Source of the DNA: Epithemia pelagica
Taxonomy: Eukaryota > Protista > Bacillariophyta
Assembly: GCA_946965045.2 (NCBI GenBank)
Contig: OX337238.1
Coordinates: 1 to 64,000, forward strand
Reading direction: 5' to 3'
Length of the DNA stretch: 64,000 bases
The position numbers were made by a program, and so were the translations under genes. Shown here one piece after another: positions 48,045 to 62,475 of this stretch (positions are counted from its first letter, which is position 1; each line of letters opens with the position of its first letter). Under the pieces are notes generated by a model, which ran no database searches, was not told where the DNA came from, and saw only the letters and a program-made list of their open reading frames with translations.

Positions 48045-48947
48045 ATGATGCCAACAACGACGACAAGGACCACCACTACAATGAGAAGAAGGCGGTCGAA
48101 CAGTTTCAGCAGCACGAGTGAAACAGCCGATACCACCATGGCAGGATCCATCACACCAAAAAGTACTACCATCCTTGCTCGAACAAAACGAAAACGAGAA
48201 ACACGTACAGTCTCGAGTAGTGTTTGGGAGAAACCCTTGTGGCTTTTGGTCGTACTACTCGTTCTGCTTCATCTTGTCGTCAATGTTGTTGTGGTTGTTG
48301 TGGACGCCAAATGCGTGGTCCGAGATGCGTACGAATCCAAAGTGCCCTTGTATCCAGAATCCATGCCCAGTGGCATTCAATACAATGCCGTATCCGACAC
48401 GTTGGTCTGTCTGTTGGACCACTCCTGTTGGGGCTATCGGTTGATTGGATGCACGAGTATTTATTGTCGCGGCCACCAATCTTGTCAAGATACGGAAATG
48501 ACGGGCAATGGTGCCGTGGCTTGTTGGGGCAGTGAAGCCTGTTTGAATGCCTACATTTCCAAGGGCAAGACCGTGGCCTGTGGCGCCGGTTATGGTGGAT
48601 CCTGTATCGATGCCACGATTGAAACGTCGGCCAGTGTCTTGTGTTATGGCGATTTTGCCTGTGTCACCCAAACCCAGGGCGGCTCGCTGTTGCCCAATAC
48701 CACGACCGTCACGGCCATGGATCGGGGTGGCATTTCCCTTCATGTCGGTCAGGGCGGTCATGTCGTGTGTTCCACCTCCACGGCCCAATTGGCCTGTCAA
48801 GACTTGTTGATTCATGTCCCCGATGTGTCGCGCGCCTGTTATGGTCCCGATACGGCCGAATCCAATCCCCACGTGACCGAATGTGCCATTATTTGTACCA
48901 GCGAAGAAGCCTGTGACAAGAGTCGCATTCAATTCATTCACGATTGA
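48045..48947 (+). CDS. 18-Cys repeat protein, paralog 1 (about 300 aa)
   Basis: Hydrophobic segment ending VDA|KC; 18 Cys in family register; C-terminal CAIIC..C..I.F. Confidence 0.85.
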   Translation: MMPTTTTRTTTTMRRRRSNSFSSTSETADTTMAGSITPKSTTILARTKRKRETRTVSSSVWEKPLWLLVVLLVLLHLVVNVVVVVVDAKCVVRDAYESKVPLYPESMPSGIQYNAVSDTLVCLLDHSCWGYRLIGCTSIYCRGHQSCQDTEMTGNGAVACWGSEACLNAYISKGKTVACGAGYGGSCIDATIETSASVLCYGDFACVTQTQGGSLLPNTTTVTAMDRGGISLHVGQGGHVVCSTSTAQLACQDLLIHVPDVSRACYGPDTAESNPHVTECAIICTSEEACDKSRIQFIHD

Positions 48948-50039
48948 TATTGCAAGAATACTATATGATTTGAGAGACAGACGACATGCAGGGAAATGGG
49001 CGTTCTGGTCGGTCCGGACAATGAAAACGAATCGAGCAGTGTCGAATCGGACATAACAACAACAACAACAAACAGACAAGAGAGAGTGACAACGCAGCGC
49101 CACCACCAGACACTGTTCTACCAGCAATCTACGCAACAACAACAACTACTACAAACAACTACACACAAATGAACTGGGGGAACACAGCACACGAACCATC
49201 ACTGGACAAACATACTAATCTGTGGCTTGTCCAACTCAAAATTACACACGTCTCATTGTCATCACCACCACCACAACTCTTGTGGAGCAGCGCACGCACT
49301 ACAACAATCTCACACTCCTCATCACAATATACTTTTATTATTAATATTATTCGTTGAAACCGAACCACCCAACCAGTGGCGTTCCTCGCTATTTTGTCTG
49401 TTTTCCAAGAAGTAGGAATGGAGACTGCCAAAGAGACTGCAGGAGGAATCTGGTTTTGCAAGTCTCTCTTTCGTAGAGGAAACGAATCCATGATTCCATT
49501 TCAAAGAAGAAAGAAAAAATGAATCATCCACTGACCGGCTCCGTTGCCAAACACCACCAAGTGGTGCGTGGTGCTGCATTCCCATTCTCTAGGGAACGCT
49601 ATTCATCGACAAGAGAGAGAGGGTGTATCTCTCTGACATTTAAACTTCTGTAAGCTTTCTATGCCAGCTATCTTTGCTACCCATTGCACGACCCCCTTTT
49701 TATCGCCCCAAGCCCCACCCCCACCCCATACAAGTACACGTACGTGGCGGCAGTAAAAACGCGACCAAAGAGCTGCTTCGCAGCTTGAAGAGGGATCCGC
49801 TACCCTTGCTATGTGAGACCCGAACTATCAAGAGCTATGGTCGCCGATATTTTCTCCAACGCTGTCCGAACTCCGAACCATCCATTGATCTCTTCTTTTC
49901 TTCTCGCCTGAATCAAAGCAACCACAACGTTTGGATCACCAAAAAATAATCGAGAGGCATCTCTCTCATTCTCTCTTCTTGCTTGTCTTCTCTTTCCGTG
50001 GAAGGCATCGGCCAGATTCATTCGGTCTTCTGTTGAATC

Positions 50040-50909
50040 ATGGCACGAGACGAACCACATGATGACCCGACGACGACGACAACCACAACAAGAAGGGATT
50101 CTCATTTCTGCCAGCGATTCTCCTTGAACAACCACAGACACAGGGCACCACGTCTGTGGTCGACGATTCTTGTGCTTTTTCTTCCATTGATTGTTGTTGC
50201 GCAACCGGCTCGAGAATGTCGTTTGGAGGACAATACTGGAATCCCCTTGCCTCTGTCCACGTATTCGGAAGAAACCTTGTTGGGTCGGGGCATTACGTAC
50301 GATTCGACGATTGACATTATTCGGTGTGTCACGGCACAAGCCTGTCAAAATTGGACCATTTCCGGCTGCACCGCCGTCTATTGTTTGGGTCGTCAAGCCT
50401 GTCAATATGCGACGCTGCGCGACAATTTGGGCATTGCCTGTTGGGCTCATGAAGCCTGTCACAATGCCACCTTGTTGCAAGTGCACGATGTGTCGTGTGG
50501 CGACGGTCACAGTCGGGCCTGTTTCAATACCGATATTACCACCAATCAACGCGTGCATTGTGTGGGACCGGGCGCCTGTGGTTTTCACAAGACGATTCGT
50601 GTGGGACGGGAAGGACAAGTCCAATGTTCCAGTGGACAAGGACAATATGCCTGTCATGATATGGTCATAACAATTTCTCATGGACAACGAGCCTGTTACT
50701 TTTCCCCGCCCCCGCCGCCCCCCACACCGGCACCCCAACAAGAATCGTGGCTCGACAAGGTTTGGAAAGGATCGTCCGATTCCGATTCCTCGTTGCGCAT
50801 TCAATCGCGAGGCGATGCCCCTCGCACCTCGTCCAATTGTGCCGTTGTCTGCGATGTCGAATCCGATTGCGACAAGGATTCCATTCGATTTGTCGTGGAA
50901 CAACATTAA
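50040..50909 (+). CDS. 18-Cys repeat protein, paralog 2 (289 aa)
   Basis: Hydrophobic segment, 18 Cys in register, Pro-rich insert after Cys15. Confidence 0.87.
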   Translation: MARDEPHDDPTTTTTTTRRDSHFCQRFSLNNHRHRAPRLWSTILVLFLPLIVVAQPARECRLEDNTGIPLPLSTYSEETLLGRGITYDSTIDIIRCVTAQACQNWTISGCTAVYCLGRQACQYATLRDNLGIACWAHEACHNATLLQVHDVSCGDGHSRACFNTDITTNQRVHCVGPGACGFHKTIRVGREGQVQCSSGQGQYACHDMVITISHGQRACYFSPPPPPPTPAPQQESWLDKVWKGSSDSDSSLRIQSRGDAPRTSSNCAVVCDVESDCDKDSIRFVVEQH

Positions 50910-51896
50910 GAAGAGAATTCCAACGATCGAGATATCGATGGATCGTTGCGGCGACACGGCCATGCACAGACACCAAGAACAACCACAAGAACAAGAACAA
51001 GTAGCTTGACAAACTACTTTGTACACAGCCCTATTTCCGTATATAGTAAAAACAGACGAACCACATCCCAACCACAACAAAAACAACGCTACGACTACTA
51101 CCAAAAATGACCCACCAAACCAAACCAACACTTCACCACCACAAACCAACTGCACCATGAGGGATGAAACCGTCCCCATTGTGTGTTTCTACAGATTGCA
51201 GTGTAGAACTGACAATCCAACAACCACAAAAACCACACAAAACGAGACATTGAACCACAAAACAAACATGCCAAAAACACCAAAACGCACACACACTCTC
51301 TATCTTGTGTATCCACACAAACCCCAAACCACTTTTTATTATTTCGACCCACCATCTTGTCCAAACTTGCGCGCGCACTTGAACAAGGAGAATACTAGAG
51401 ACTCCTTGGAATATAGCTAAACGATGATGATACACCAATTTCTACCTCTAGAGTAGTTATTTGTTGCGACAGAGTTTCGTAGGTCCAGCTGTTGGACGAT
51501 ATGTGCGAACCACAGCAAAGACTCAGCTACAACGCGCCATGGCCTCTTGTGTGTTCTCCTTGCTCACCACCAGGATACGAGTTTTTGCCCGTGACACACA
51601 TGTTGTTGGGTCTCGATCTACCGAATGGGCGCGAGCGTGGGTCTACACGAAACTGCCATACGCAGGACATTCCCAACAACTACAACAACACAACAACAAG
51701 ACAATGACCCGTATGGTGTGGGTTTGCGTGCTTGGTTTCCCAGAAATGGCTCCTAAACGCGATACTACCATCATAGCTACTGTGGCTAGAACTAACATCG
51801 CGAATATGCTCACGCGCCACCATGGATTGTACTCGTCCTTCTCTCACACGGGCCAACCCCTCTTAAGATACCAACCGTCTCTCTTTGTATTCTTCC

Positions 51897-51898
<2 letters not shown>

Positions 51899-51928
<30 letters not shown>
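51899..51928 (+). repeat. (GA)n microsatellite
   Basis: Perfect dinucleotide run. Confidence 0.95.
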
Positions 51929-51932
<4 letters not shown>

Positions 51933-52213
51933 GAGGGTAATGCACATTGTGCTACTCCTAGGAGTATATGACCGATGATATAGCTACCATGGCTACCCAG
52001 AAAAGACGGAAAAGAATTCTGTTGTCACGTGAAGTTTGCCGACGTGTCCCGATTTCCTTCAAGATTTGCCCTTGAAACGCGAATCGAAGAACACACAACA
52101 CAAGAAGAGAGAGTCATCTCTATGATCTCATGGAGTCCTATAGAGATCTCGTATCCTTTGGTACAGTGTTGGAAGAAAAAGCAACCAGAAAACTACCATA
52201 TTGTCCTTGCACG

Positions 52214-53356
52214 ATGAACAAGACTCTCAGCAGCATGTCTACAAGTTTTGGACTCCATCGTTCTTCTTCTTCCCTTGTTCTCCTTTTACTTGTCGTCCTC
52301 CTTTCTGGCACTCGTCGAGTCCTGGTTGTAGAGGCCCTGTGTCAAGTCCACGATGAACATGGCAAACCGGTGGCTCTCAAAACCACAACCTTGCCGGCCG
52401 GTGTCATGTACGGTGTCGTGACGGACAAGCTGGTGTGCGGAAGTCCAGGCGTGTGTCGCGAATGGACCATGGAAGGGTGTACGACCGTCTATTGTCAAGC
52501 CCCGTATGCGTGTCAAAATGCCACTTTAAAAAACAACTATGGGACGGCCTGTTGGGACGATCATGCCTGCGATTCGGCCAATTTGTTAACGACGCACGAT
52601 GTGTCGTGTGGCGATGGCTTTGATTATACCTGTCGCAAGGCTCGGATTGAAACCGATACCAATTTGTTGTGTTTTGGACGACGCGCCTGTATTGGCACGG
52701 TCATACCGCAACAATTTCGCTATGAATTGCCCGAGGACGAAGAAAATCTCGTGGGCAGTGGCGGCTATCAATATTCGCCCGACGATCCCAAAGTGCCACC
52801 CGAAGGATCGCAACCTCAACAACGACCGGATGATTGGAGCATGAATCCAAACCAAAAAAAAACTGCCAAGAATGATCCGGACGGTCCCATTCACATTTAC
52901 TTGTTGGGACCGAGCAGTCAAGTCCAATGTGCCAGTAGTGAAAGTGGTCGCGTCATTGGCAGTCGAGCGACCGGTGTGGCCTGTCAAGGCTTGCACATTT
53001 ACATTCCTCGGCAATTCAAGGAACGAGCCTGTGTGGGCGAATTGAGTTTTGATGAATCCAGCACCACGACAACGGATGAAGAACCACCACCATCGGATGG
53101 CGAACACATGGGATCCACCACCACCACAGAGGCGTGGAACGATGCTCCGAAAAATAAATTGCGCATCAAGCAAAAAAATCCCAAAAAACCCATCAAACCA
53201 GGCAAGTTTGAGAATCCCGAATTGGTTCCGGAAAAGCAAGAACATCATCATCGACATCACAATGCCGACGATTGGACCAATTCCGATTGTGCGGTCGTAT
53301 GTGCCACACCGCAAGCGTGTGATCGAGCCACGTTCGAATTCTTTTTCATTAATTAA
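52214..53356 (+). CDS. 18-Cys repeat protein, paralog 3 (about 380 aa)
   Basis: Signal-like segment ending VEA|LC; 18 Cys; long charged inserts after Cys12 and Cys15. Confidence 0.87.
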   Translation: MNKTLSSMSTSFGLHRSSSSLVLLLLVVLLSGTRRVLVVEALCQVHDEHGKPVALKTTTLPAGVMYGVVTDKLVCGSPGVCREWTMEGCTTVYCQAPYACQNATLKNNYGTACWDDHACDSANLLTTHDVSCGDGFDYTCRKARIETDTNLLCFGRRACIGTVIPQQFRYELPEDEENLVGSGGYQYSPDDPKVPPEGSQPQQRPDDWSMNPNQKKTAKNDPDGPIHIYLLGPSSQVQCASSESGRVIGSRATGVACQGLHIYIPRQFKERACVGELSFDESSTTTTDEEPPPSDGEHMGSTTTTEAWNDAPKNKLRIKQKNPKKPIKPGKFENPELVPEKQEHHHRHHNADDWTNSDCAVVCATPQACDRATFEFFFIN

Positions 53357-53800
53357 TGAACGAGCAAAAACGAAAGCAGCAGCAAGAAAATCAACATCAA
53401 CAAGGGCACGACGGCGATCGAGGCACAAGAAGGAATGACGAGTTGGTCACGAATCTCGGGACCTCCTTACCATAGCAGAGAAACCAAACAAGATGACAAA
53501 GAAGAAGGATTTCAGGAATCGAACCTCCGCACAGTCCAGTGGTTGCGTCGGAGCGTGGAGTAGGTACACTCCGAGTACAAGGAGAACCACAAGAAACACC
53601 AGTCTTTTTTGTATGGAACGGAGATACTACTAGGTACTCTACCGACACAAACTCACGAAAGGCTGCGCGGTTCCCGGATGGATTTGTCCATGATACTTAC
53701 TATACTATTCCCATAGAATGAGATGTCTCTCGATCCTAGTATGTAGATCGTACTCAGAGTGCGGCTGCTCTCGAGTGTGGGTGCTGGTTGCCCTTCGAAT

Positions 53801-53804
<4 letters not shown>

Positions 53805-53834
<30 letters not shown>
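53805..53834 (+). repeat. (CT)n microsatellite
   Basis: Perfect dinucleotide run. Confidence 0.95.
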
Positions 53835-53835
<1 letters not shown>

Positions 53836-54022
53836 GCTACTCCTAGTAGCTTTACAAGGTAGGGAAGTATGGGGGTCGCGTGTGGGGTCGCGCTTTGTAG
53901 GGAAAAGGATTCTCGCCACGTAGGACGTGCCAACCGAATGCCAACCGAAATAAGGTTGAATCGTTTGGGATGATGAATGGCGTTGGAATTGGGAACTGGG
54001 ACGGTTGGAATCCTCGTCGAGT

Positions 54023-54024
<2 letters not shown>

Positions 54025-54059
<35 letters not shown>
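54025..54059 (+). repeat. (AG)n microsatellite
   Basis: Perfect run just upstream of paralog 4. Confidence 0.95.
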
Positions 54060-54061
<2 letters not shown>

Positions 54062-54094
54062 ATCATTGACAAAAAAGAACCAGCACAAGCCGTG

Positions 54095-55027
54095 ATGTTA
54101 CTGCGGATTCTGCCTTTTCTCCTCCTTTTAGAAGCTGTTGTTTGGATGCCACGGATCGTGCAGGGTCGTTGTGTGATTCACGATGCCGACGGCGAATTGG
54201 TTCCCTTGGATTTGGACGGTCCCAATCCTCAATTTCCTCGTCCCGGTTTGGAATACGATCCGGAATTTGACATTTTTGAATGTACCGATGATTTTAGTTG
54301 TGAGGGATGGACGATTCAAGGCTGTCGGGCCTTGTATTGCGATGGCAAATCGTCCTGTCGGGCTGCCCACTTGCGCAACAATACCGGTGTGGCTTGTTTT
54401 GCCCATTCCGCCTGTCATTCGGCCACGATTGTCATGCACGCCTTGCCCTCGTCGCATCATGCCACGACGAGTACAACTGCATTGCAACCCCTCGGACAAG
54501 GTCCTTCGGTGTGGTGGGTCGATACACTTACCTGTGGCGCCGACTATTTGCACTCCTGTACCAATGTGACCGTCACCACACCCGGACAAGTCGTCTGCTT
54601 CGGTCCGCAGGCCTGTAGTAGTAGCAGCAGCAGTCTTCCCGTGTCGACCACAACCACAACAACCGCTACTCCCACTACTACTGCTACTCCTACGGAATTG
54701 CGCCTCGTTTTGCAAGGCCAAGTCAGTCATGTCCGGTGTGTCAGCGATGCCTCGTCGCAACAATTGTTTCGACCGCCCGAGGAGTTTCACATTCCCTCCA
54801 ACCACAACCAAAACAACCACAAGAACAAGCACCATTCGTTGCGAATTCAATCACCACCCACATGTTCGCATTTGCACGTGACGGTCCCCTCATCCGATCG
54901 AGCTTGTATTGCCACCAGCACGGCGTCGACCCAGAGCAAGTGCGGCGTGATTTGCGTGTCACCACACGATTGCAATGTCGGTACCATTCAATTTCACGTG
55001 GCGGAATCGACGAACAACCACACCTAA
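54095..55027 (+). CDS. 18-Cys repeat protein, paralog 4 (about 310 aa)
   Basis: Signal-like segment ending VQG|RC; 18 Cys; S/T-rich insert after Cys12. Confidence 0.87.
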   Translation: MLLRILPFLLLLEAVVWMPRIVQGRCVIHDADGELVPLDLDGPNPQFPRPGLEYDPEFDIFECTDDFSCEGWTIQGCRALYCDGKSSCRAAHLRNNTGVACFAHSACHSATIVMHALPSSHHATTSTTALQPLGQGPSVWWVDTLTCGADYLHSCTNVTVTTPGQVVCFGPQACSSSSSSLPVSTTTTTTATPTTTATPTELRLVLQGQVSHVRCVSDASSQQLFRPPEEFHIPSNHNQNNHKNKHHSLRIQSPPTCSHLHVTVPSSDRACIATSTASTQSKCGVICVSPHDCNVGTIQFHVAESTNNHT

Positions 55028-55321
55028 CCACCAACCAGGACGAGAGAGAGAGAGGAAAAAAAAACACACACACACAAGTGTAGTCTGCTTTTTTGGTTCG
55101 CTCTCTGGAAAATGCCAAATGGAGGAACCCAAACTCGACGCTCCACACCACCACAAGAATGAGGTCCCATACGATATGGATCAGTAGAGAAATGGTTCGT
55201 GTTGTTGGCCGTAGCTGATTGCAATGTCGGTACCATTCAATTTCACGTGGCGGAATCCTAGCGAAAAAACACAAAAAACCACCAACCAGGACGATAGAGA
55301 CAAGAGAGAGACAAGAGAGAG

Positions 55322-55324
<3 letters not shown>

Positions 55325-55371
<47 letters not shown>
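55325..55371 (+). repeat. (AG)n microsatellite
   Basis: Perfect run preceded by ACAAGAGAG variants. Confidence 0.95.
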
Positions 55372-55373
<2 letters not shown>

Positions 55374-57074
55374 ACCCACAAGTGTGTCTCCGCTGTTGCA
55401 AGGACTGGGATTGTACAGTCCATTCGAACAGCTCTGGAGCATCCTCCCAAGCAACACTCGACGACGACAACCCTGTGGTCGGGAACGGCCAAGGGAATCG
55501 TGTGACGGGTCGTCCCATATTGTACGACGAGAGTGTTCCAAGAAGCACGTCTCTCGGTCGCCAATCATCAAGTCATTTCACGCGAAAGCGACAAACCACA
55601 ATCCACACACACGTGTGGAAACTTGCGCACACACGTGTGGAATATCCCGCGCATCCACGTGCTCGGAGACGTTTGGTGGTGTGGTATACCACAGCTCTTG
55701 TTCCTGTTCCTCACGCACGCTCGGTTTGCAGCGTACTCCTATACAATCTGGATGTGCGTGGTTCCAGGCTCTGTGAACGACCGTCACGGATTCGGTTGGG
55801 TGGATGGATGGATCTATTATTGCTGGGGTTTGTAGATACGGTTCGTCAAATCTGGGAAAACGAGTCAAACTCGAAATCTAGCTACGCTCCTCTCTCCGCA
55901 TGGATCCAGGAGAGTCGACATCCGGCCCAATGCTGCAGAAAGAGCGAGCGAGAAAGAGCTCTGTGGAATGACTCTTTGTTTCAGGGTGCCGGTGAACAAG
56001 GGCACGATTGAAAAGACCAGAAATCGATAGAGAGGGTACAAAAAGTTCACGCAATGACGTAGGTTCGGTGTCGAGGAGTACTTGCTTTCTCTTGTATGTA
56101 CTGGCCGTCGTTCTTCTATGGACAGCACCTCGCTCCTCTAGCTAGTGTTGTGGACTCCTGGATCCATCCGTTGTGACTGTTTATGCGTCGAGTGGTTATT
56201 GTGGAGAGCCTCGTCAAGTTTGCAGGGTGCCAATCATCACTGTCTGTGGCTATTACGCGGACGTTGTCGTCCTTTGTGTTGTTCCCATGGATCATCATCA
56301 TCACACACACACACAATTGAAGGTGGACCGATGAGACCATGGAGATCCATATTCTATATAAATATTGGAGTATAGTAGCTATAGCATATGGATCGTCTTG
56401 GAGCAATGACGAAGCGGAATCCCCCCAACTCTTGGGAGCAATAGGAAACATGGTTTTTGTTTTTTTCTCTCTATAGTTTGAATACTAGCAAATATATATG
56501 TACAAGGTTGAGCGCACGCATAGTATATCTGTTCCTCTTGTTCTTGTCCTCCAGTTTGCAATGTTCAGTTCGTCGTTTTTGGTTCGTCTTTCTTTACTGG
56601 CGCAGTTCGTCGTCACCGCTCATCTCTACCATCATTCGTTGCGTTTGCCGTTTTGGTATACACCACTCTCTCTTTCTCTCTCCCTTTGACACGAGTCTTG
56701 AAGTTTACCTACGGTACTATATAGTAGGGGGATGATACTCACCCACACCGTCGTCTCGACCCCCGTTTCCTTTGGGCAAGCCTGGAAAAACAATCGTCGG
56801 TGGTAATAGGGATGATCTCACCAGCAATCTCCATCTGCGAGCGTGGTGAGAAATAGTTATCCTTTCTGTTCCTGGTGTGGGTGTTGTTAGCATTGTACAT
56901 TTGGCACGGACTGTCCTTGGAATTGTTTCCAATCATGCCGTGTCTCGTTTCTCATATGGTTTCCAATCCACATTCTGTTTTGTTTGTTTCCAATGTGATT
57001 CGTTCCTTTTCATATTGTGTTCTTATTTTGGTTCTGGTTCTTGTGGTAGTTGTGGTGGTTGCAGATTAGTATTC

Positions 57075-57791
57075 TTATTTGGGTCCACCAACTGCCTTGG
57101 TGCGGACTTGAAAGTGAATGGTCTCGGCATCGCAATCCTTATCCGTGGCACAGACAACGGCACAGGGCGAAATGGTATCATGACCATTGCCGCGATGCAT
57201 ATCATCGACCAAACAGGCGCGAGAGGAATCGGGCACGTGCACGACCAAATTTTCACAGGCTGGTCCATCGTCGCCATTGGCACACCGGACATGACCCTTG
57301 TACCCGACAATGTGAATGACCATAAAATCATTCTTATTGTTGGATGACCCATGCACACAGGCATCTTGTCCATAACAGAGCAATTGGGCATCTGTTTCAA
57401 TGACCGCCTCGGCACAGGATCGATCAAAGCCGGCGCCACAGGAAATATCGTGCGCGGCAGAAATGCGAGCGCCTTGACAAGCGGCCAATTCCCAACAGGC
57501 GACCCCGCCATGATCCGTCAAGGTCGCTTGTTCGCACGAGGCCGGACCGGTACAATACAAGGCATCACAGCCGACAATCTTCCAGCCTTGACAAGCGCGG
57601 GTCGATAAACATTCCAAAATGTCCCGTTGTCGATCGTAGGCAATGCCGCGTGGTAAATTCACGGCTGTCAAGGCCACGCGATTGCCCTTGTCGTCGTGCA
57701 CCGAACACAAGGCTTTCACGGTCGTTGTCCTTGTCGACCAAAAGAAGACGGAATAAGAATAATAGAAAGAGAGGATCCATGGAATCTTCAT
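57075..57791 (-). CDS. 18-Cys repeat protein, paralog 5 (238 aa, minimal form)
   Basis: MKIPWILSF..VKA|LC; 18 Cys; shortest loops; inverted relative to paralogs 1-4. Confidence 0.85.
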   Translation of the reverse strand: MKIPWILSFYYSYSVFFWSTRTTTVKALCSVHDDKGNRVALTAVNLPRGIAYDRQRDILECLSTRACQGWKIVGCDALYCTGPASCEQATLTDHGGVACWELAACQGARISAAHDISCGAGFDRSCAEAVIETDAQLLCYGQDACVHGSSNNKNDFMVIHIVGYKGHVRCANGDDGPACENLVVHVPDSSRACLVDDMHRGNGHDTISPCAVVCATDKDCDAETIHFQVRTKAVGGPK

Positions 57792-58605: not shown

Positions 58606-61467
58606 CTATGAATCTCTAGAGGGTGGTTGGTTGGGAGGAAGAGGAGGTTGTTTCTTGGTTTCGTTCCCGACAACTGGTAGTGGTGATGGATCGTCTTTCT
58701 TCTTCTTCTTCTTCTTGTCGTCGTGAGAGCTCGCCGTCGTTGCTGTGGTGCTGCTGGTTGGCGACGCGGCGGCTTGGTGGTCCACCACGCAAGATGGTTC
58801 GCCAGTAGTAGTAGTAGTGGCCAAACCTGCAGTTGTGGCAAGTGATGGTGGTGCCGACGACTGAGCTTGTGGCTGCTGTGCTTGCTGCTGCTGCTGAAGC
58901 ATGCATGGTTGGAGCAACAATTGCAAAATCAAGGGACTAATCAACGAGGCCGTCGTCGTCGCCGAGGACGACGACAAGGCTCCTCCTGGCACCAAAGGAG
59001 GAGGAGAAGGAGGAATAGGATGGGACGGTGTGGTACTGGTCGTGCCGATACTACTTGGCCTGGGCGGATGCTGCTGGGTCCATCCCGTCCCAGTGCTGGT
59101 TGCAGCAGCAGTACGAGAGGAGGGCGGAGCCGTATTCGTAGTGGAAGCGGCCGCAGCGGTCTCCAGCAACTGCAAACTGGTCGAAATACTCTCCAATTGT
59201 TGTTGCTGCTGCTGTTGTTGCTGTTGCTGTTGTGAGTCTGACAATGGCGGTTCTTGTGGTGTGGGTCTTGGTGTTGGTTGTGAGGACGAGGTAACTCCTG
59301 CTCCCGACAAGGAGGGCCATGCCGAGAATGGGTTGCTGCTGTGAAGATTGGTGTTCACTTGTTGTGACTGTGATTGTGGTATAGCGATTGGGGCTGCGGC
59401 CGTTATGGTATTAGAGGTAGAGGAGGAAGCGGCGAATGGCAAGGCTGCTGGATTCGTGCCGTCTTGTGGTGGTAAAGTTTGTGGTGGTGTGGTGGCAAAC
59501 GTACTCGTGCTGGTCAGACTGCTAGGAGGAGGAACAAAGGAGCGCAAAATCAAGAGAATGGTCTCGAGGGAACTCAATAGTTGTGCAGCAGCATGGTGGG
59601 ATTCTTGAGTGGAAGTAGTGAGGGACGGGGCGGTCGATGTGGTTGTTGGGTTGGAGATCATGGAGCCTCTATTACTATCAACAGTGTTGGGAGGTGCAGT
59701 AACTGTGGAAGGAAGAATACTCGGAGCTGATGGGTTGGTGTGTGTAGTGGACGGGGAAGAAAAGGCTGTGGAAGCAATGGTAGCAGGAGACGGGAGTGTG
59801 CTGGTCGGGAAGACTGCTGGTGGTGGTGGTTGCGGAAGGAGCGGAGCCTGCATTCCCACAGCAGGGGCCGTTGTTGTTATTGGATTCGTTGGATTGGTCG
59901 TTGGGAAGAGGAGATTCCAGAATGGAGAGGACATGGACGTTGTTGCTGGTGACGTCGTGGTACTGGTATTAGTCGAAGCTCCTGTCACGGCTGCTCTCCA
60001 AAACGCAGGGTCCGAAGGCGGCGGAAACGTCGGAAGAACCTCTTGTTGCAGAGTGGCCATGGGTGCGGCCACACCTGAAGAGCTACCCAGTAGCGCTGAT
60101 GCAGTACTACTACCCGGATCAGCCGTCAGGATGGCATCCTCTCGAGTCGTACTACCGGTAGTTGGGTTTGCCGGAGGTGGCAATAGCAATCCTAACAAGG
60201 ACTGCATGGCGGCCAGTGTTTCCGGTTGCATCGTCGACAAGGCAGAGGACGAAGAAGAAGAGGGCGGTTCTTGTACTGGTGCAGTGCTGACGGCAGCAGT
60301 CCCAGCCGGGTGTTGACTCATGACTGCTGGTGGAAGAACTTGGGGTGCTGATGAAGATTGTTGAAGTGTCGAAGTGACAGCCTGCTGTAATTGCTGTCTG
60401 GTCTGTATCGGTGATGCTGAAGGAGGACCTACCAAGGCATTGCTTGCTTGGGATGATTCCTTAGGTGTGGACGGCTCGATTGGTCCCTGTTCCTCTTGCG
60501 GTGATTGTAACGACTCTTGGACCAGACTTTGCTTGAAGAGATCGAGCATTTGAACTTTTTGTTTGAGAAACATGAACGTCACCAGCAGGGGGTTCTGTTG
60601 CTGATCTGGGTTACTAGCTGCAGGAGTAGCTGCAGCAGTCGCCAGAGTAGCTGAAGCCGTACCAGGAGCCACTGGTGGTACACTGGGTGTCGAAGACGAC
60701 GATGAGGAGGATTGTGGAGGGTTCCACTGTTCCAAAAGTTGAGACGGTTGCACCGATGCCATGCAGGTTAAAAGGGCGGCACGCAGAAGCTCAATAACAT
60801 TGAGTTTGGTGGCCAAACTGAGAGCAGGTGGCCGAGTAGTCGCACTGGCCAATGGCGGTCGTCCTTGCCGGGCAGCAGCAGTCGCAGCGGATTGCTCCTC
60901 TTGTTCTTGTCTCAGAGAAGCCAAGAGTGTGTTCAATGCTGCCTCAAGTCGTTCCAAACGATCATTGTCAATTAACAATATCGAATTAAGTTTATCATAA
61001 AGTTCCAGTTGCTCATTCAAGGCTTCGACTTGCTCCCGTTCGCGTTGCCGCGTACGACGAGCACTGATGCGATTAATCGCACGTTTGCGTTCGCGCTGGG
61101 CTTGCGTCATTTGTCGCACCACAAAGCCATTGCGAGAAAACCGACGATCACGCAAATGCCGTTTCAAGGCTTCCTCTCGTTTGTCTTCCGAGCCATCCTT
61201 TTCCTCTAGGTCCTGTTGTGGTTGTTGTGGTTCTCGTGAAGCTGACGATGACTGTGGTTGTGTCATTGTGGCACTGTCTACTACTTCCATCTCGGCTTCT
61301 TCTCCAGCAATGTTGGTCTCATCCTCATCAGCTTCATCATCTGCTTCGGCTCCCTTGTCCTCATCATCGTCCTTTTCGTCATTGTGAAAGTGGACCGACC
61401 TACGGCTGCTCGGCTTGCCATCGTCGTCGCTTTTTCGTTTTCGTCGTCGACCTCCTGGCTCGTTCAT
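58606..61467 (-). CDS. bZIP transcription factor with long S/T/P/Q-rich disordered C-terminus (about 953 aa)
   Basis: QRERKRAINRISARRTRQRE (N-x7-R basic region) followed by Leu heptads VEALNEQLELYDKLNSILL; basic clusters at both ends. Confidence 0.8.
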   Translation of the reverse strand: MNEPGGRRRKRKSDDDGKPSSRRSVHFHNDEKDDDEDKGAEADDEADEDETNIAGEEAEMEVVDSATMTQPQSSSASREPQQPQQDLEEKDGSEDKREEALKRHLRDRRFSRNGFVVRQMTQAQRERKRAINRISARRTRQREREQVEALNEQLELYDKLNSILLIDNDRLERLEAALNTLLASLRQEQEEQSAATAAARQGRPPLASATTRPPALSLATKLNVIELLRAALLTCMASVQPSQLLEQWNPPQSSSSSSSTPSVPPVAPGTASATLATAAATPAASNPDQQQNPLLVTFMFLKQKVQMLDLFKQSLVQESLQSPQEEQGPIEPSTPKESSQASNALVGPPSASPIQTRQQLQQAVTSTLQQSSSAPQVLPPAVMSQHPAGTAAVSTAPVQEPPSSSSSSALSTMQPETLAAMQSLLGLLLPPPANPTTGSTTREDAILTADPGSSTASALLGSSSGVAAPMATLQQEVLPTFPPPSDPAFWRAAVTGASTNTSTTTSPATTSMSSPFWNLLFPTTNPTNPITTTAPAVGMQAPLLPQPPPPAVFPTSTLPSPATIASTAFSSPSTTHTNPSAPSILPSTVTAPPNTVDSNRGSMISNPTTTSTAPSLTTSTQESHHAAAQLLSSLETILLILRSFVPPPSSLTSTSTFATTPPQTLPPQDGTNPAALPFAASSSTSNTITAAAPIAIPQSQSQQVNTNLHSSNPFSAWPSLSGAGVTSSSQPTPRPTPQEPPLSDSQQQQQQQQQQQQLESISTSLQLLETAAAASTTNTAPPSSRTAAATSTGTGWTQQHPPRPSSIGTTSTTPSHPIPPSPPPLVPGGALSSSSATTTASLISPLILQLLLQPCMLQQQQQAQQPQAQSSAPPSLATTAGLATTTTTGEPSCVVDHQAAASPTSSTTATTASSHDDKKKKKKKDDPSPLPVVGNETKKQPPLPPNQPPSRDS

Positions 61468-62475
61468 GGTGCAAAATTGCCCTGGATAGGTGCTTTTAGT
61501 TTTGCTGTTCGGACTTTGGACCCTACTACCCACTTATTTGATTCTGTTCAGGGTTCAGGACCCCGTCATCATCGCCACCAAAGTTGACTCTTCGAATCCT
61601 TTGTGAGTCAGAATGCGTTCCATTTCCCAGTCACGCTTGAAGCGGGAGTGATACTCGGAAGAAAAATATTCTTCTGGAGGATTCCTGAGGAGTCGAGAAG
61701 ATCCTAATTTTTCATTTAGTTGAAGTTTTGGAATGCGTAGTGCACTTCCGAATTCCGAATGACGCACAGAAGGTCCTGGTGACACACGCAGAACAGCCCT
61801 CTTGTTGTGCACCCTCTGCATTGGATATAAACTGGAAACGGCAATCGGTCCGGGTCACATTCATGAACCTACGCACAAGGAAACCAAAGTACGTTGATCT
61901 CTCTGTGGTCTCAGTTGTTTCTGGGTTCTCCCCTGTTTCGGACAGCTACACAATATAGACACATCGCCGACTGACAAACGCCACAGTCTCGCAATTCGCA
62001 ATGACTGTGCGAGACAGGAAGAACTGAGAACTTATTGTTTGTGGCGATATGTCTGCAAGAACACGAAGGAGAGAGACGCAAAACATCGAGGGACCAGAAA
62101 AAGAGAAAGGGGTAGGTGGTTTCAAGTTCCTTTTTAGGTAGTTGATCTCGATCAACGTGCGTTCTTGTATTTGGTTCTTTTACTCGCGTGCTTGCATTTG
62201 GTTCTTTCTGTTTCGCGTCCTTGAAACACTCAGTGTGGACGAAAGTCTAGATCCGTTTCGAGTCATCCACCGACGCACTACAAAGAGATGAATCATGTAT
62301 GTATAGGTAGTCACTGAACTGTTCCAGTGGGTACCATCGTTCTCACCATGCGCAATTCTTTCTGTTTGGGGTAGACTTGTTAGGTCTACCTAGTAGGAGT
62401 AAATGGGTAGACTATGATTTGCGCTTTGCTCTCTGTTGATAATCAATCGTTTCATTCTAAACCAAATCAATCTCT

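Follow-up and report, generated by a model that had tools for sequence, protein, structure and literature searches.

The antifreeze proteins of the beetles Tenebrio molitor and Dendroides are disulfide-laddered β-helices built from the 12-residue repeat T-C-T-x-S-x-x-C-x-x-A-x. The NCR peptides of legumes, the BCR peptides of aphids and the short chromatophore-targeted proteins (sCTPs) of Paulinella are 35–108 residues long, contain 4–8 cysteines and are in many cases antimicrobial (PMC12176269). Here we analyse a stretch of 64,000 nucleotides from the diatom Epithemia pelagica (positions 1–64000 of contig 11, which comprises 3,409,954 bases; OX337238.1 in assembly GCA_946965045.2; hereafter ‘the window’), in which five paralogous genes located between 48.1 and 57.8 kb encode proteins with 18 invariant cysteines. 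Sequence comparison and structure prediction suggest to classify these proteins as a new family of disulfide-laddered β-solenoids with a 19-residue coil, and we tentatively propose that they act around the nitrogen-fixing endosymbiont of Epithemia, the diazoplast.

Like the antifreeze proteins of Tenebrio and Dendroides, the proteins encoded by the array appear to be secreted solenoids with a cysteine-rich core and with C-x5-C followed by x2-A in the coil, and it was this motif which had led an earlier note on the window, made from the sequence alone, to link them to Tenebrio-type β-solenoids. The motif is indeed shared, but the link extends no further: the coil comprises 19 residues instead of 12, the T-C-T ice-binding ladder is found in 0/14 genomic copies, PDB sequences provide no match to the family profile even at E≤10, and the beetle protein is missing from the 50 best structural matches. 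With NCR peptides, BCR peptides and sCTPs, the family has in common a (predicted) signal peptide, an invariant cysteine framework and a hypervariable mature part (PMC12176269), and it likewise represents a large, lineage-specific expansion in a host whose endosymbiont fixes nitrogen or supplies nutrients. Unlike those peptides, its members comprise ∼210 residues with 18 cysteines, are mostly acidic and are predicted to form a solenoid, and they lie outside the size range of NCR and BCR peptides (less than ∼110 residues, 4–8 cysteines). The coil geometry of the predicted fold resembles that of bactofilin (2n3d), of pectate and alginate lyases, and of autotransporter and two-partner-secretion adhesins, but these bacterial and phage right-handed solenoids are devoid of a disulfide ladder and exhibit only 4–15% sequence identity. 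The five genes and the chromosome end are located in the window as follows.

1–556: telomere repeat (CCCTAA)n, ∼550 bases, at the start of the window.
48138–48947, plus strand: paralog A (open reading frame and cysteine map; family-profile match E 1.8e-85), with a predicted signal or anchor segment at 48138–48308, cut after V-D-A, and the mature 18-cysteine domain at 48309–48944, followed by the stop codon; 48045, taken as the start in the earlier note, is an earlier in-frame Met.
50040–50909, plus strand: paralog B (open reading frame, cysteine map and alignment; profile match E 4.5e-78), with a long N-terminal segment and hydrophobic core at 50040–50210, a predicted cut after Q-P-A, the mature domain at 50211–50906, and a Pro-rich insert between Cys15 and Cys16.
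52214–53356, plus strand: paralog C (open reading frame, cysteine map and alignment; profile match E 1.7e-80), with a predicted signal peptide at 52214–52336, cut after V-E-A, the mature domain at 52337–53353, and two long inserts, charged and of low complexity, one of which includes a Lys-rich stretch at 53150–53206.
54095–55027, plus strand: paralog D (open reading frame, cysteine map and alignment; profile match E 1.0e-83), with a predicted signal peptide at 54095–54166, cut after V-Q-G, the mature domain at 54167–55024, a Ser/Thr/Pro mucin-like insert at 54617–54694 and two further inserts.
57075–57791, minus strand: paralog E, the most compact copy (open reading frame, cysteine map and alignment; profile match E 2.2e-87), with a predicted signal peptide at 57711–57791, cut after V-K-A, and the mature domain at 57078–57710.

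All five genes (four on the plus and one on the minus strand) are intact single-exon open reading frames (ORFs), and each encodes exactly 18 cysteines downstream of a hydrophobic segment; the additional cysteines in the raw long ORFs of A, B, C and E are located upstream of that segment and thus outside the mature protein. The spacing C-x31-36-C-x5-C-x7-C-x4-C-x5-C-x12-C-x5-C-x12-C-x7-C-x12-C-x5-C, followed by three variable gaps and C-x3-C-x5-C, is identical in A–E apart from the three variable loops. In the five-way alignment, with pairwise identities of 33–37%, 18/18 cysteine columns are invariant, as they are in an alignment of 15 sequences, and in an alignment of 59 sequences 17 cysteines are 100% conserved and, of the sequences covering the position of Cys1, 54/55 contain it. 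The matches of the five window genes to the family profile (E 1e-78 to 1e-87) indicate homology and not chance, and the proposal of five single-exon paralogs with 18 cysteines in register is thereby borne out. The autocorrelation of cysteine positions peaks at 19, 6, 13, 38 and 57 residues, in agreement with the repeat of about 19 residues noticed earlier. The core repeat had been written as C-x5-C-x2-A: C-x5-C is indeed found five times per protein, but the full motif just 1–4 times, with Ala at +3 being the consensus after three of the coil cysteines in the 59-sequence alignment. The proposed ending C-A-V-V-C-x5-C-x4-(I/F)-x-F is present in both the five-way and the 15-sequence alignment.

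The other positions conserved among the 59 sequences are mostly small or hydrophobic (Ala, Gly, Val, Ile, Leu); the conserved polar and aromatic ones are Y27, W45, T46, R166, F202, D8, D32, N69, H163 and D196, and no cluster of conserved residues with a catalytic appearance is found across these sequences. Mature domains range from 198 to 341 residues across the genomic copies, with a core of ∼210, and are mostly acidic (isoelectric point 4.5–6.1 in 11/14 copies). Long inserts, different from one paralog to the next, are accommodated at three loop sites; they include a poly-Pro insert in a copy located at 68.8 kb. This pattern of conservation fits a rigid scaffold which would bind through variable surfaces. 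The Lys-rich stretch of paralog C, found in this paralog only, has six Lys within 13 residues (K-Q-K-N-P-K-K-P-I-K-P-G-K) and recalls the lysine clusters of diatom silica-associated proteins.

A profile search of the genome (60.5 Mb, 23 contigs) yields at least 14 family members, every one on contig 11: five in the window, one at 68.8 kb, six at 103–115 kb, and two at 2.32 and 2.35 Mb. The 18 cysteines are in register in all 14, and 12/14 copies are located at most 115 kb from the telomere; given the telomere repeat at 1–556, the array in the window lies 48–58 kb from the true chromosome end. In a second ENA assembly, ERZ21939226, all five genes recur in unchanged order on contig ctg1333l. When compared with it, A–E exhibit a synonymous difference of 0.12 and a non-synonymous difference of 0.015, the ratio of the two (pN/pS) being 0.12 overall and 0.04–0.23 per gene. 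Hence, all five genes are under purifying selection in the given frames, and the possibility of chance ORFs or pseudogenes is ruled out by the five intact frames together with these ratios. The second assembly is collinear with the window at 47–64 kb and exhibits 3–10% base differences in the genes, which is high for two haplotypes of one strain; it may stem from a sister lineage, or else from a subtelomeric haplotype that has diverged strongly.

The AlphaFold2 model of the mature domain of paralog E, calculated from the 15-sequence alignment, has a mean predicted local distance difference test score (pLDDT) of 90.3 and a predicted template modelling score (pTM) of 0.86. The model of mature A, calculated from the 59-sequence alignment, has the same scores (pLDDT 90.3, pTM 0.86) and an identical strand pattern. 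Both are all-β, with short strands every 19–21 residues and with low confidence restricted to the variable loops. The models thus predict, with high confidence, a right-handed β-solenoid whose roughly seven coils comprise 19 residues and one cysteine pair each, and in which the conserved Ala, Val, Ile and Leu and the 18 cysteines would form the core, while the surface and two or three loop sites would be free to vary. Foldseek provided no match in the PDB at E≤0.001. In the exhaustive structural comparison, 50/50 best matches are β-solenoids (Z-scores 7.1–9.1), with bactofilin 2n3d ranking first (Z-score 9.1; root mean square deviation 2.2 Å over 103 residues) and with the alginate lyase 6kfn, the bacterial antifreeze protein 3p4g, two-partner-secretion domains, pentapeptide-repeat proteins, Ag43 and pectate lyases among the other top neighbours; re-comparison of the Foldseek candidates yielded β-solenoids again (Z-scores 5.6–8.8). 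According to the guidance for such comparisons, Z-scores of 7–9 reflect a shared general arrangement and not kinship, and the matches were therefore used to assign the fold class alone. The β-solenoid suspected from the cysteine pattern is thus supported by prediction.

In the models, the coil cysteines are located at the end of one strand per coil and 6–9 residues later; each coil contains a C-x5-8-C pair. A parity argument favours disulfide pairing within the coils, since pairing between coils would leave Cys50 without a nearby partner. Pairing within the coils would in turn leave Cys4–Cys50 for the N-terminal cap and four cysteines for two bridges of the C-terminal cap.

Signal peptides were assigned by a rule-based reading of charge, Kyte-Doolittle window and cut-site residues in the 14 genomic copies. 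A hydrophobic core precedes Cys1 in 14/14 copies (mean Kyte-Doolittle value of the best 12-residue window 1.2–3.4), with a net positive charge ahead of the core in 13/14. The V-x-A/G pattern just before Cys1, pointed out in the earlier note, is likewise found in 13/14 copies, Val or a similar residue occupying position −3 and a small residue standing two positions ahead of Cys1 (for example V-K-A, V-D-A, V-E-A and V-Q-G). This resembles a classical signal-peptidase site, and Cys1 would become the second residue of the mature protein. A positively charged n-region, a hydrophobic h-region and small residues at −3 and −1 are thus all found, and this tripartite arrangement supports the secretory character claimed for the proteins. 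The predicted signal peptides of C, D and E are short and ordinary. Where A and B start is uncertain, since 36–42 residues lie between the nearest upstream Met and the hydrophobic core; either these two proteins start elsewhere, or the segment serves as a signal anchor. None of the 14 copies has a hydrophobic tail at its C-terminus, and hence nothing points to a membrane or lipid anchor.

The earlier note had suggested a profile search across diatoms and other protists. A full scan with a hidden Markov model (HMM) of 1.84 billion representative proteins, including those of NCBI, MMETSP and EukProt, yielded 178 matches at E≤0.001, of which 57 are full-length (E 1e-26 to 1e-88). The source genome's own copies account for 13 of these (≥97.5% identity). 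E. clementina contributes 14 full-length representatives, along with close copies in their clusters: at least 11 representatives are encoded on the 1.44-Mb contig JBGMNV010000076.1 (ACA910_011187–011232), and further members are found at ACA910_000094–000105, 006922 and 018575. Two contigs of E. adnata 19Bon2 were traced to the genomic reads SRR25945676, and an E. adnata origin is assumed, not traced, for five more Logan contigs with full-length members; the remaining traced members come from two ENA assemblies. Every traced full-length relative thus belongs to Epithemia (E. clementina, E. adnata) or to ENA assemblies close to the source genome, and no other diatom appears among the full-length matches. 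The family is therefore not diatom-wide, and the single-domain 18-cysteine format, with its own N-terminal cap and a C-A-V-V-C...F C-terminal cap, is known only from Epithemia. In one of these ENA assemblies, the member on the 3.34-Mb contig ctg3482l of ERZ25042306 is 37–43% identical to any source-genome copy and adjoins a retrotransposon reverse-transcriptase ORF as well as several ORFs of 219–230 residues, which may be further members. A word-index protein search yielded only 2 and 4 matches, since the members diverge too rapidly to retain 5-residue words in common. Annotated members are all labelled ‘hypothetical protein’, and the literature searched contains no description of the family.

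A maximum-likelihood tree of 59 sequences consists of two well-supported halves, one with all 14 source-genome copies mixed with some from E. clementina and others, and the other with 36 representatives, none of them from the source genome. Terminal branches are long (median 0.93 changes per site), and the window paralogs do not form a recent clade, which indicates that the array is old, as had been presumed from the divergence of its members, and that the family evolves by birth and death. Segmental duplication is evident in E. clementina, where a segment of ∼11 kb (L027 3350–14340, on JBGMNV010000272.1, and L028 5297–15080, on JBGMNV010000097.1) is duplicated with 92–97% DNA identity; the duplicate pair ACA910_000105 and ACA910_018575 is identical at 254/258 residues.

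No Pfam family reaches its cut-off for any of A–E, in keeping with the earlier statement that no family was recognised. The best match is DUF7640 (PF24646) in paralog B, with 15.1 bits (E 0.028) against a gathering cut-off of 28.1, and A, C, D and E have no match to it. The 18-cysteine proteins share with DUF7640 a C-x-G-x-x-(A/S)-C unit every 19–20 residues as well as the start C-x5-(A/S)-C-(E/Q)-G-W. In the source genome, two tandem genes on contig 4 (3811694–3813265) encode proteins in which several cysteine-containing repeats at the N-terminus are joined by a P-T-rich linker to a DUF7640 domain above cut-off at the C-terminus; among recognised proteins of that genome, these are the closest relatives of the coil unit. 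The hhalign comparison of the family with the DUF7640 domain encoded at position 3811694 provided a weak alignment (probability 33.5%, E 4.4e-4, 57 columns).

Weaker HMM matches cover the coil region alone, in 2–5 stretches. The best of these partial matches (E 1e-17, 4–5 stretches) are 700-residue proteins labelled as Foraminifera (Nonionella, Bolivina, Ammonia), which score 17–28.5 bits with DUF7640 against the cut-off of 28.1, one of them just exceeding it; weak leads to foraminiferal clusters (score 0.83) also emerged from the protein atlas. Diatoms serve these foraminifera as food or as a source of plastids that they retain, and the transcripts may therefore be of diatom origin. The coil unit thus seems to be widespread among protists, and the 18-cysteine family and DUF7640 probably share a distant repeat ancestor. 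A resemblance to bacterial He_PIG surface proteins (P0048, P0059, P0070 and P0080) was rejected as a sign of kinship: these proteins cover only profile positions 7–39, repeatedly, and P0048, a Gram-positive surface protein with 17 matching stretches, has no cysteine. The similarity probably reflects a likeness to the short L-P-x-G-V motif and not homology of the solenoid. It is the N-terminal cap motif of the family, L-P-x-G-V-x-Y-D-x-x-x-D-x-L, located in paralog E at ∼57600–57695, which draws matches to the putative Ig domain of He_PIG.

It is thus highly probable that the array encodes an Epithemia-specific family of secretory proteins with a β-solenoid fold. Judging from the sequences, the precursor would enter the endoplasmic reticulum (ER) by virtue of its signal peptide and would be cleaved just before Cys1. 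The mature part is predicted, at high confidence, to fold into a solenoid of about seven coils with a core of cysteine and alanine. Nine disulfides could then lock the solenoid, six of them as C-x5-8-C staples within coils and three securing the N- and C-terminal caps, and the result might well be a rigid, protease-resistant binding scaffold that operates outside the cytosol through its variable faces. As a last step, we would venture that the secretory pathway delivers this stable binding module to the host-membrane-bound space around the diazoplast, where it might act as a binder of the endosymbiont envelope. We assign to this site of action a rough probability of 40%.

Frustule coat, adhesive mucilage or recognition had been put forward in the earlier note as the roles of a surface or matrix protein; the restriction to Epithemia opens a different, endosymbiont-linked reading. 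Just six host proteins were found to be enriched in purified diazoplasts of E. clementina (PMC12377750), and three of these (Ec_g12982, Ec_g13000 and Ec_g24166) belong to one orthogroup, OG0000250 (Frail et al. 2025, PMC12377750). This orthogroup is devoid of domains and common to E. clementina and E. pelagica only; Ec_g24166 is identical to Ec_g03819 and located in a short duplication, and Ec_g12982 and Ec_g13000 are numbered 18 apart (PMC12377750), which suggests a tandem cluster and a short duplication in OG0000250. As a review points out, the six diazoplast-enriched host proteins need to pass at least the host membrane, which is lost when diazoplasts are purified (PMC12176269). The 18-cysteine family is, like OG0000250, confined to Epithemia, tandemly arrayed and segmentally duplicated, and it is on these grounds that we suggest the endosymbiont as the destination; a signal peptide would allow the host-derived compartment to be reached by default. 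With at least 14 genes in the source genome and at least 14 traced in E. clementina, the family would, by a rough reckoning, also be large enough to rank about 250th among the orthogroups. We consider it somewhat less probable than the proposed site of action itself that the 18-cysteine family is the Epithemia-only orthogroup which co-purifies with the diazoplast.

Several points weigh against placing the family at the diazoplast. The distribution matches that of OG0000250, which is necessary but not sufficient, since 1,109 orthogroups are likewise found in Epithemia only (PMC12377750), and lineage restriction alone is thus weak evidence. An attempt to match the Ec_g numbers to NCBI locus tags by order failed, as the tags do not follow the order of the contigs (contig 272 carries tags around 000100 and contig 76 tags around 0112xx), which leaves the family as a candidate for OG0000250. 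The duplicate pair ACA910_000105 and ACA910_018575 differs at 4/258 residues, whereas the published pair is described as identical, and the authors could not exclude non-specific enrichment (PMC12377750); dense wall fragments could also co-sediment with diazoplasts. Furthermore, the signal peptides are assigned by rule-based reading, and five copies have n-segments of 28–49 residues before the hydrophobic core and could thus carry signal anchors.

The strongest competitor, which we regard as unlikely but by no means negligible, is a matrix protein of the cell surface, frustule coat or adhesive mucilage, residing in the organic casing or the raphe mucilage, with the inserts as glycosylated or silica-binding spacers. 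Secretory features and an acidic mature domain would be in line with such a role, as would the mucin-like insert of paralog D (54617–54694) and the Lys-rich insert of paralog C (53150–53206), since Ser/Thr/Pro mucin-like and Lys-rich stretches resemble those of diatom wall proteins. The bacterial adhesins Ag43, TibA, EtpA and HMW1 are among the structural neighbours, and a polyamine-synthase-type gene (Spermine_synth match) adjoins the array. However, these inserts are confined to single paralogs and not conserved, and neither an anchor nor a silaffin-type processing motif nor a known wall-protein domain is present. Moreover, all raphid diatoms make frustules and mucilage, so that a matrix role leaves the restriction to Epithemia unexplained.

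Clearly less probable is a role in outward recognition or defence, in which a fast-evolving secreted binder (lectin-like, anti-microbial, anti-grazer or for gamete recognition) would have been diversified by birth and death in a subtelomeric array. A conserved scaffold with a hypervariable surface, the long terminal branches, lineage-specific expansions such as the clade of 36 representatives without a source-genome member, and the proximity of 12 of the 14 copies to the telomere are all features that one would associate with such a binder. Recent evolution, however, is strongly purifying and not diversifying (pN/pS 0.12), and Pfam provides no known lectin or defence domain.

A polysaccharide-active enzyme of the pectate-lyase or alginate-lyase β-helix type appears very improbable: many structural neighbours are lyases or esterases (e.g., 6kfn with a Z-score of 8.8, 4u49 and 1ee6), but Z-scores of 7–9 at identities of 4–10% are typical of a shared general architecture, the roughly seven short coils contain no conserved acidic or basic active-site cluster, and no Pfam lyase family is matched. 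Most improbable of all is a Tenebrio-type ice-binding protein, since neither the C-x5-C-x2-A shared with the beetle 12-residue repeat nor the presence of the bacterial β-helical antifreeze 3p4g among the structural neighbours (Z-score 8.8) outweighs a period of 19, the absence of T-C-T and of any PDB sequence match, and a host that lives in warm subtropical water.

Further features are found in and beside the array. Its spacers contain perfect (GA)n/(CT)n microsatellites of 15–35 copies (51899–51929, 53805–53834, 54025–54059 and 55303–55371), one of them just upstream of paralog C and another extending into the 5' end of the ORF of paralog D; these could be promoter or recombination elements. 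Directly adjoining paralog E is an ORF of 975 residues on the minus strand (58606–61533), which is rich in Ser, Thr, Pro and Gln, is conserved in the second assembly ERZ21939226, and has a borderline bZIP_1 match at residues 144–198 (27.3 bits against a cut-off of 27.6).

Epithemia is a leading model for a nitrogen-fixing bacterium that is becoming a permanent cell compartment, and published work has found almost no host proteins on the endosymbiont and has called them functionless unknowns. If our reading is true, this would be the first case in which host proteins of known sequence pattern and predicted fold are shown to travel along the secretory pathway to the nitrogen-fixing endosymbiont of a diatom. 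The 18-cysteine proteins would then represent a large-format analogue of the legume NCR peptides, encoded in subtelomeric arrays and acting on the endosymbiont surface in a partnership which otherwise exhibits almost no genetic integration. For the unknowns this would provide a fold, namely a rigid solenoid locked by disulfides; a route, through the ER and the secretory pathway; and a genomic logic, in which subtelomeric arrays are old and expanding, the scaffold is fixed and the surface is free. Host control of the endosymbiont would then become testable. Even without a link to the endosymbiont, this new family of eukaryotic disulfide-laddered β-solenoids informs the design of cysteine-rich solenoids and our understanding of the wider C-x-G-x-x-A-C (DUF7640-like) repeat of diatoms and Foraminifera.

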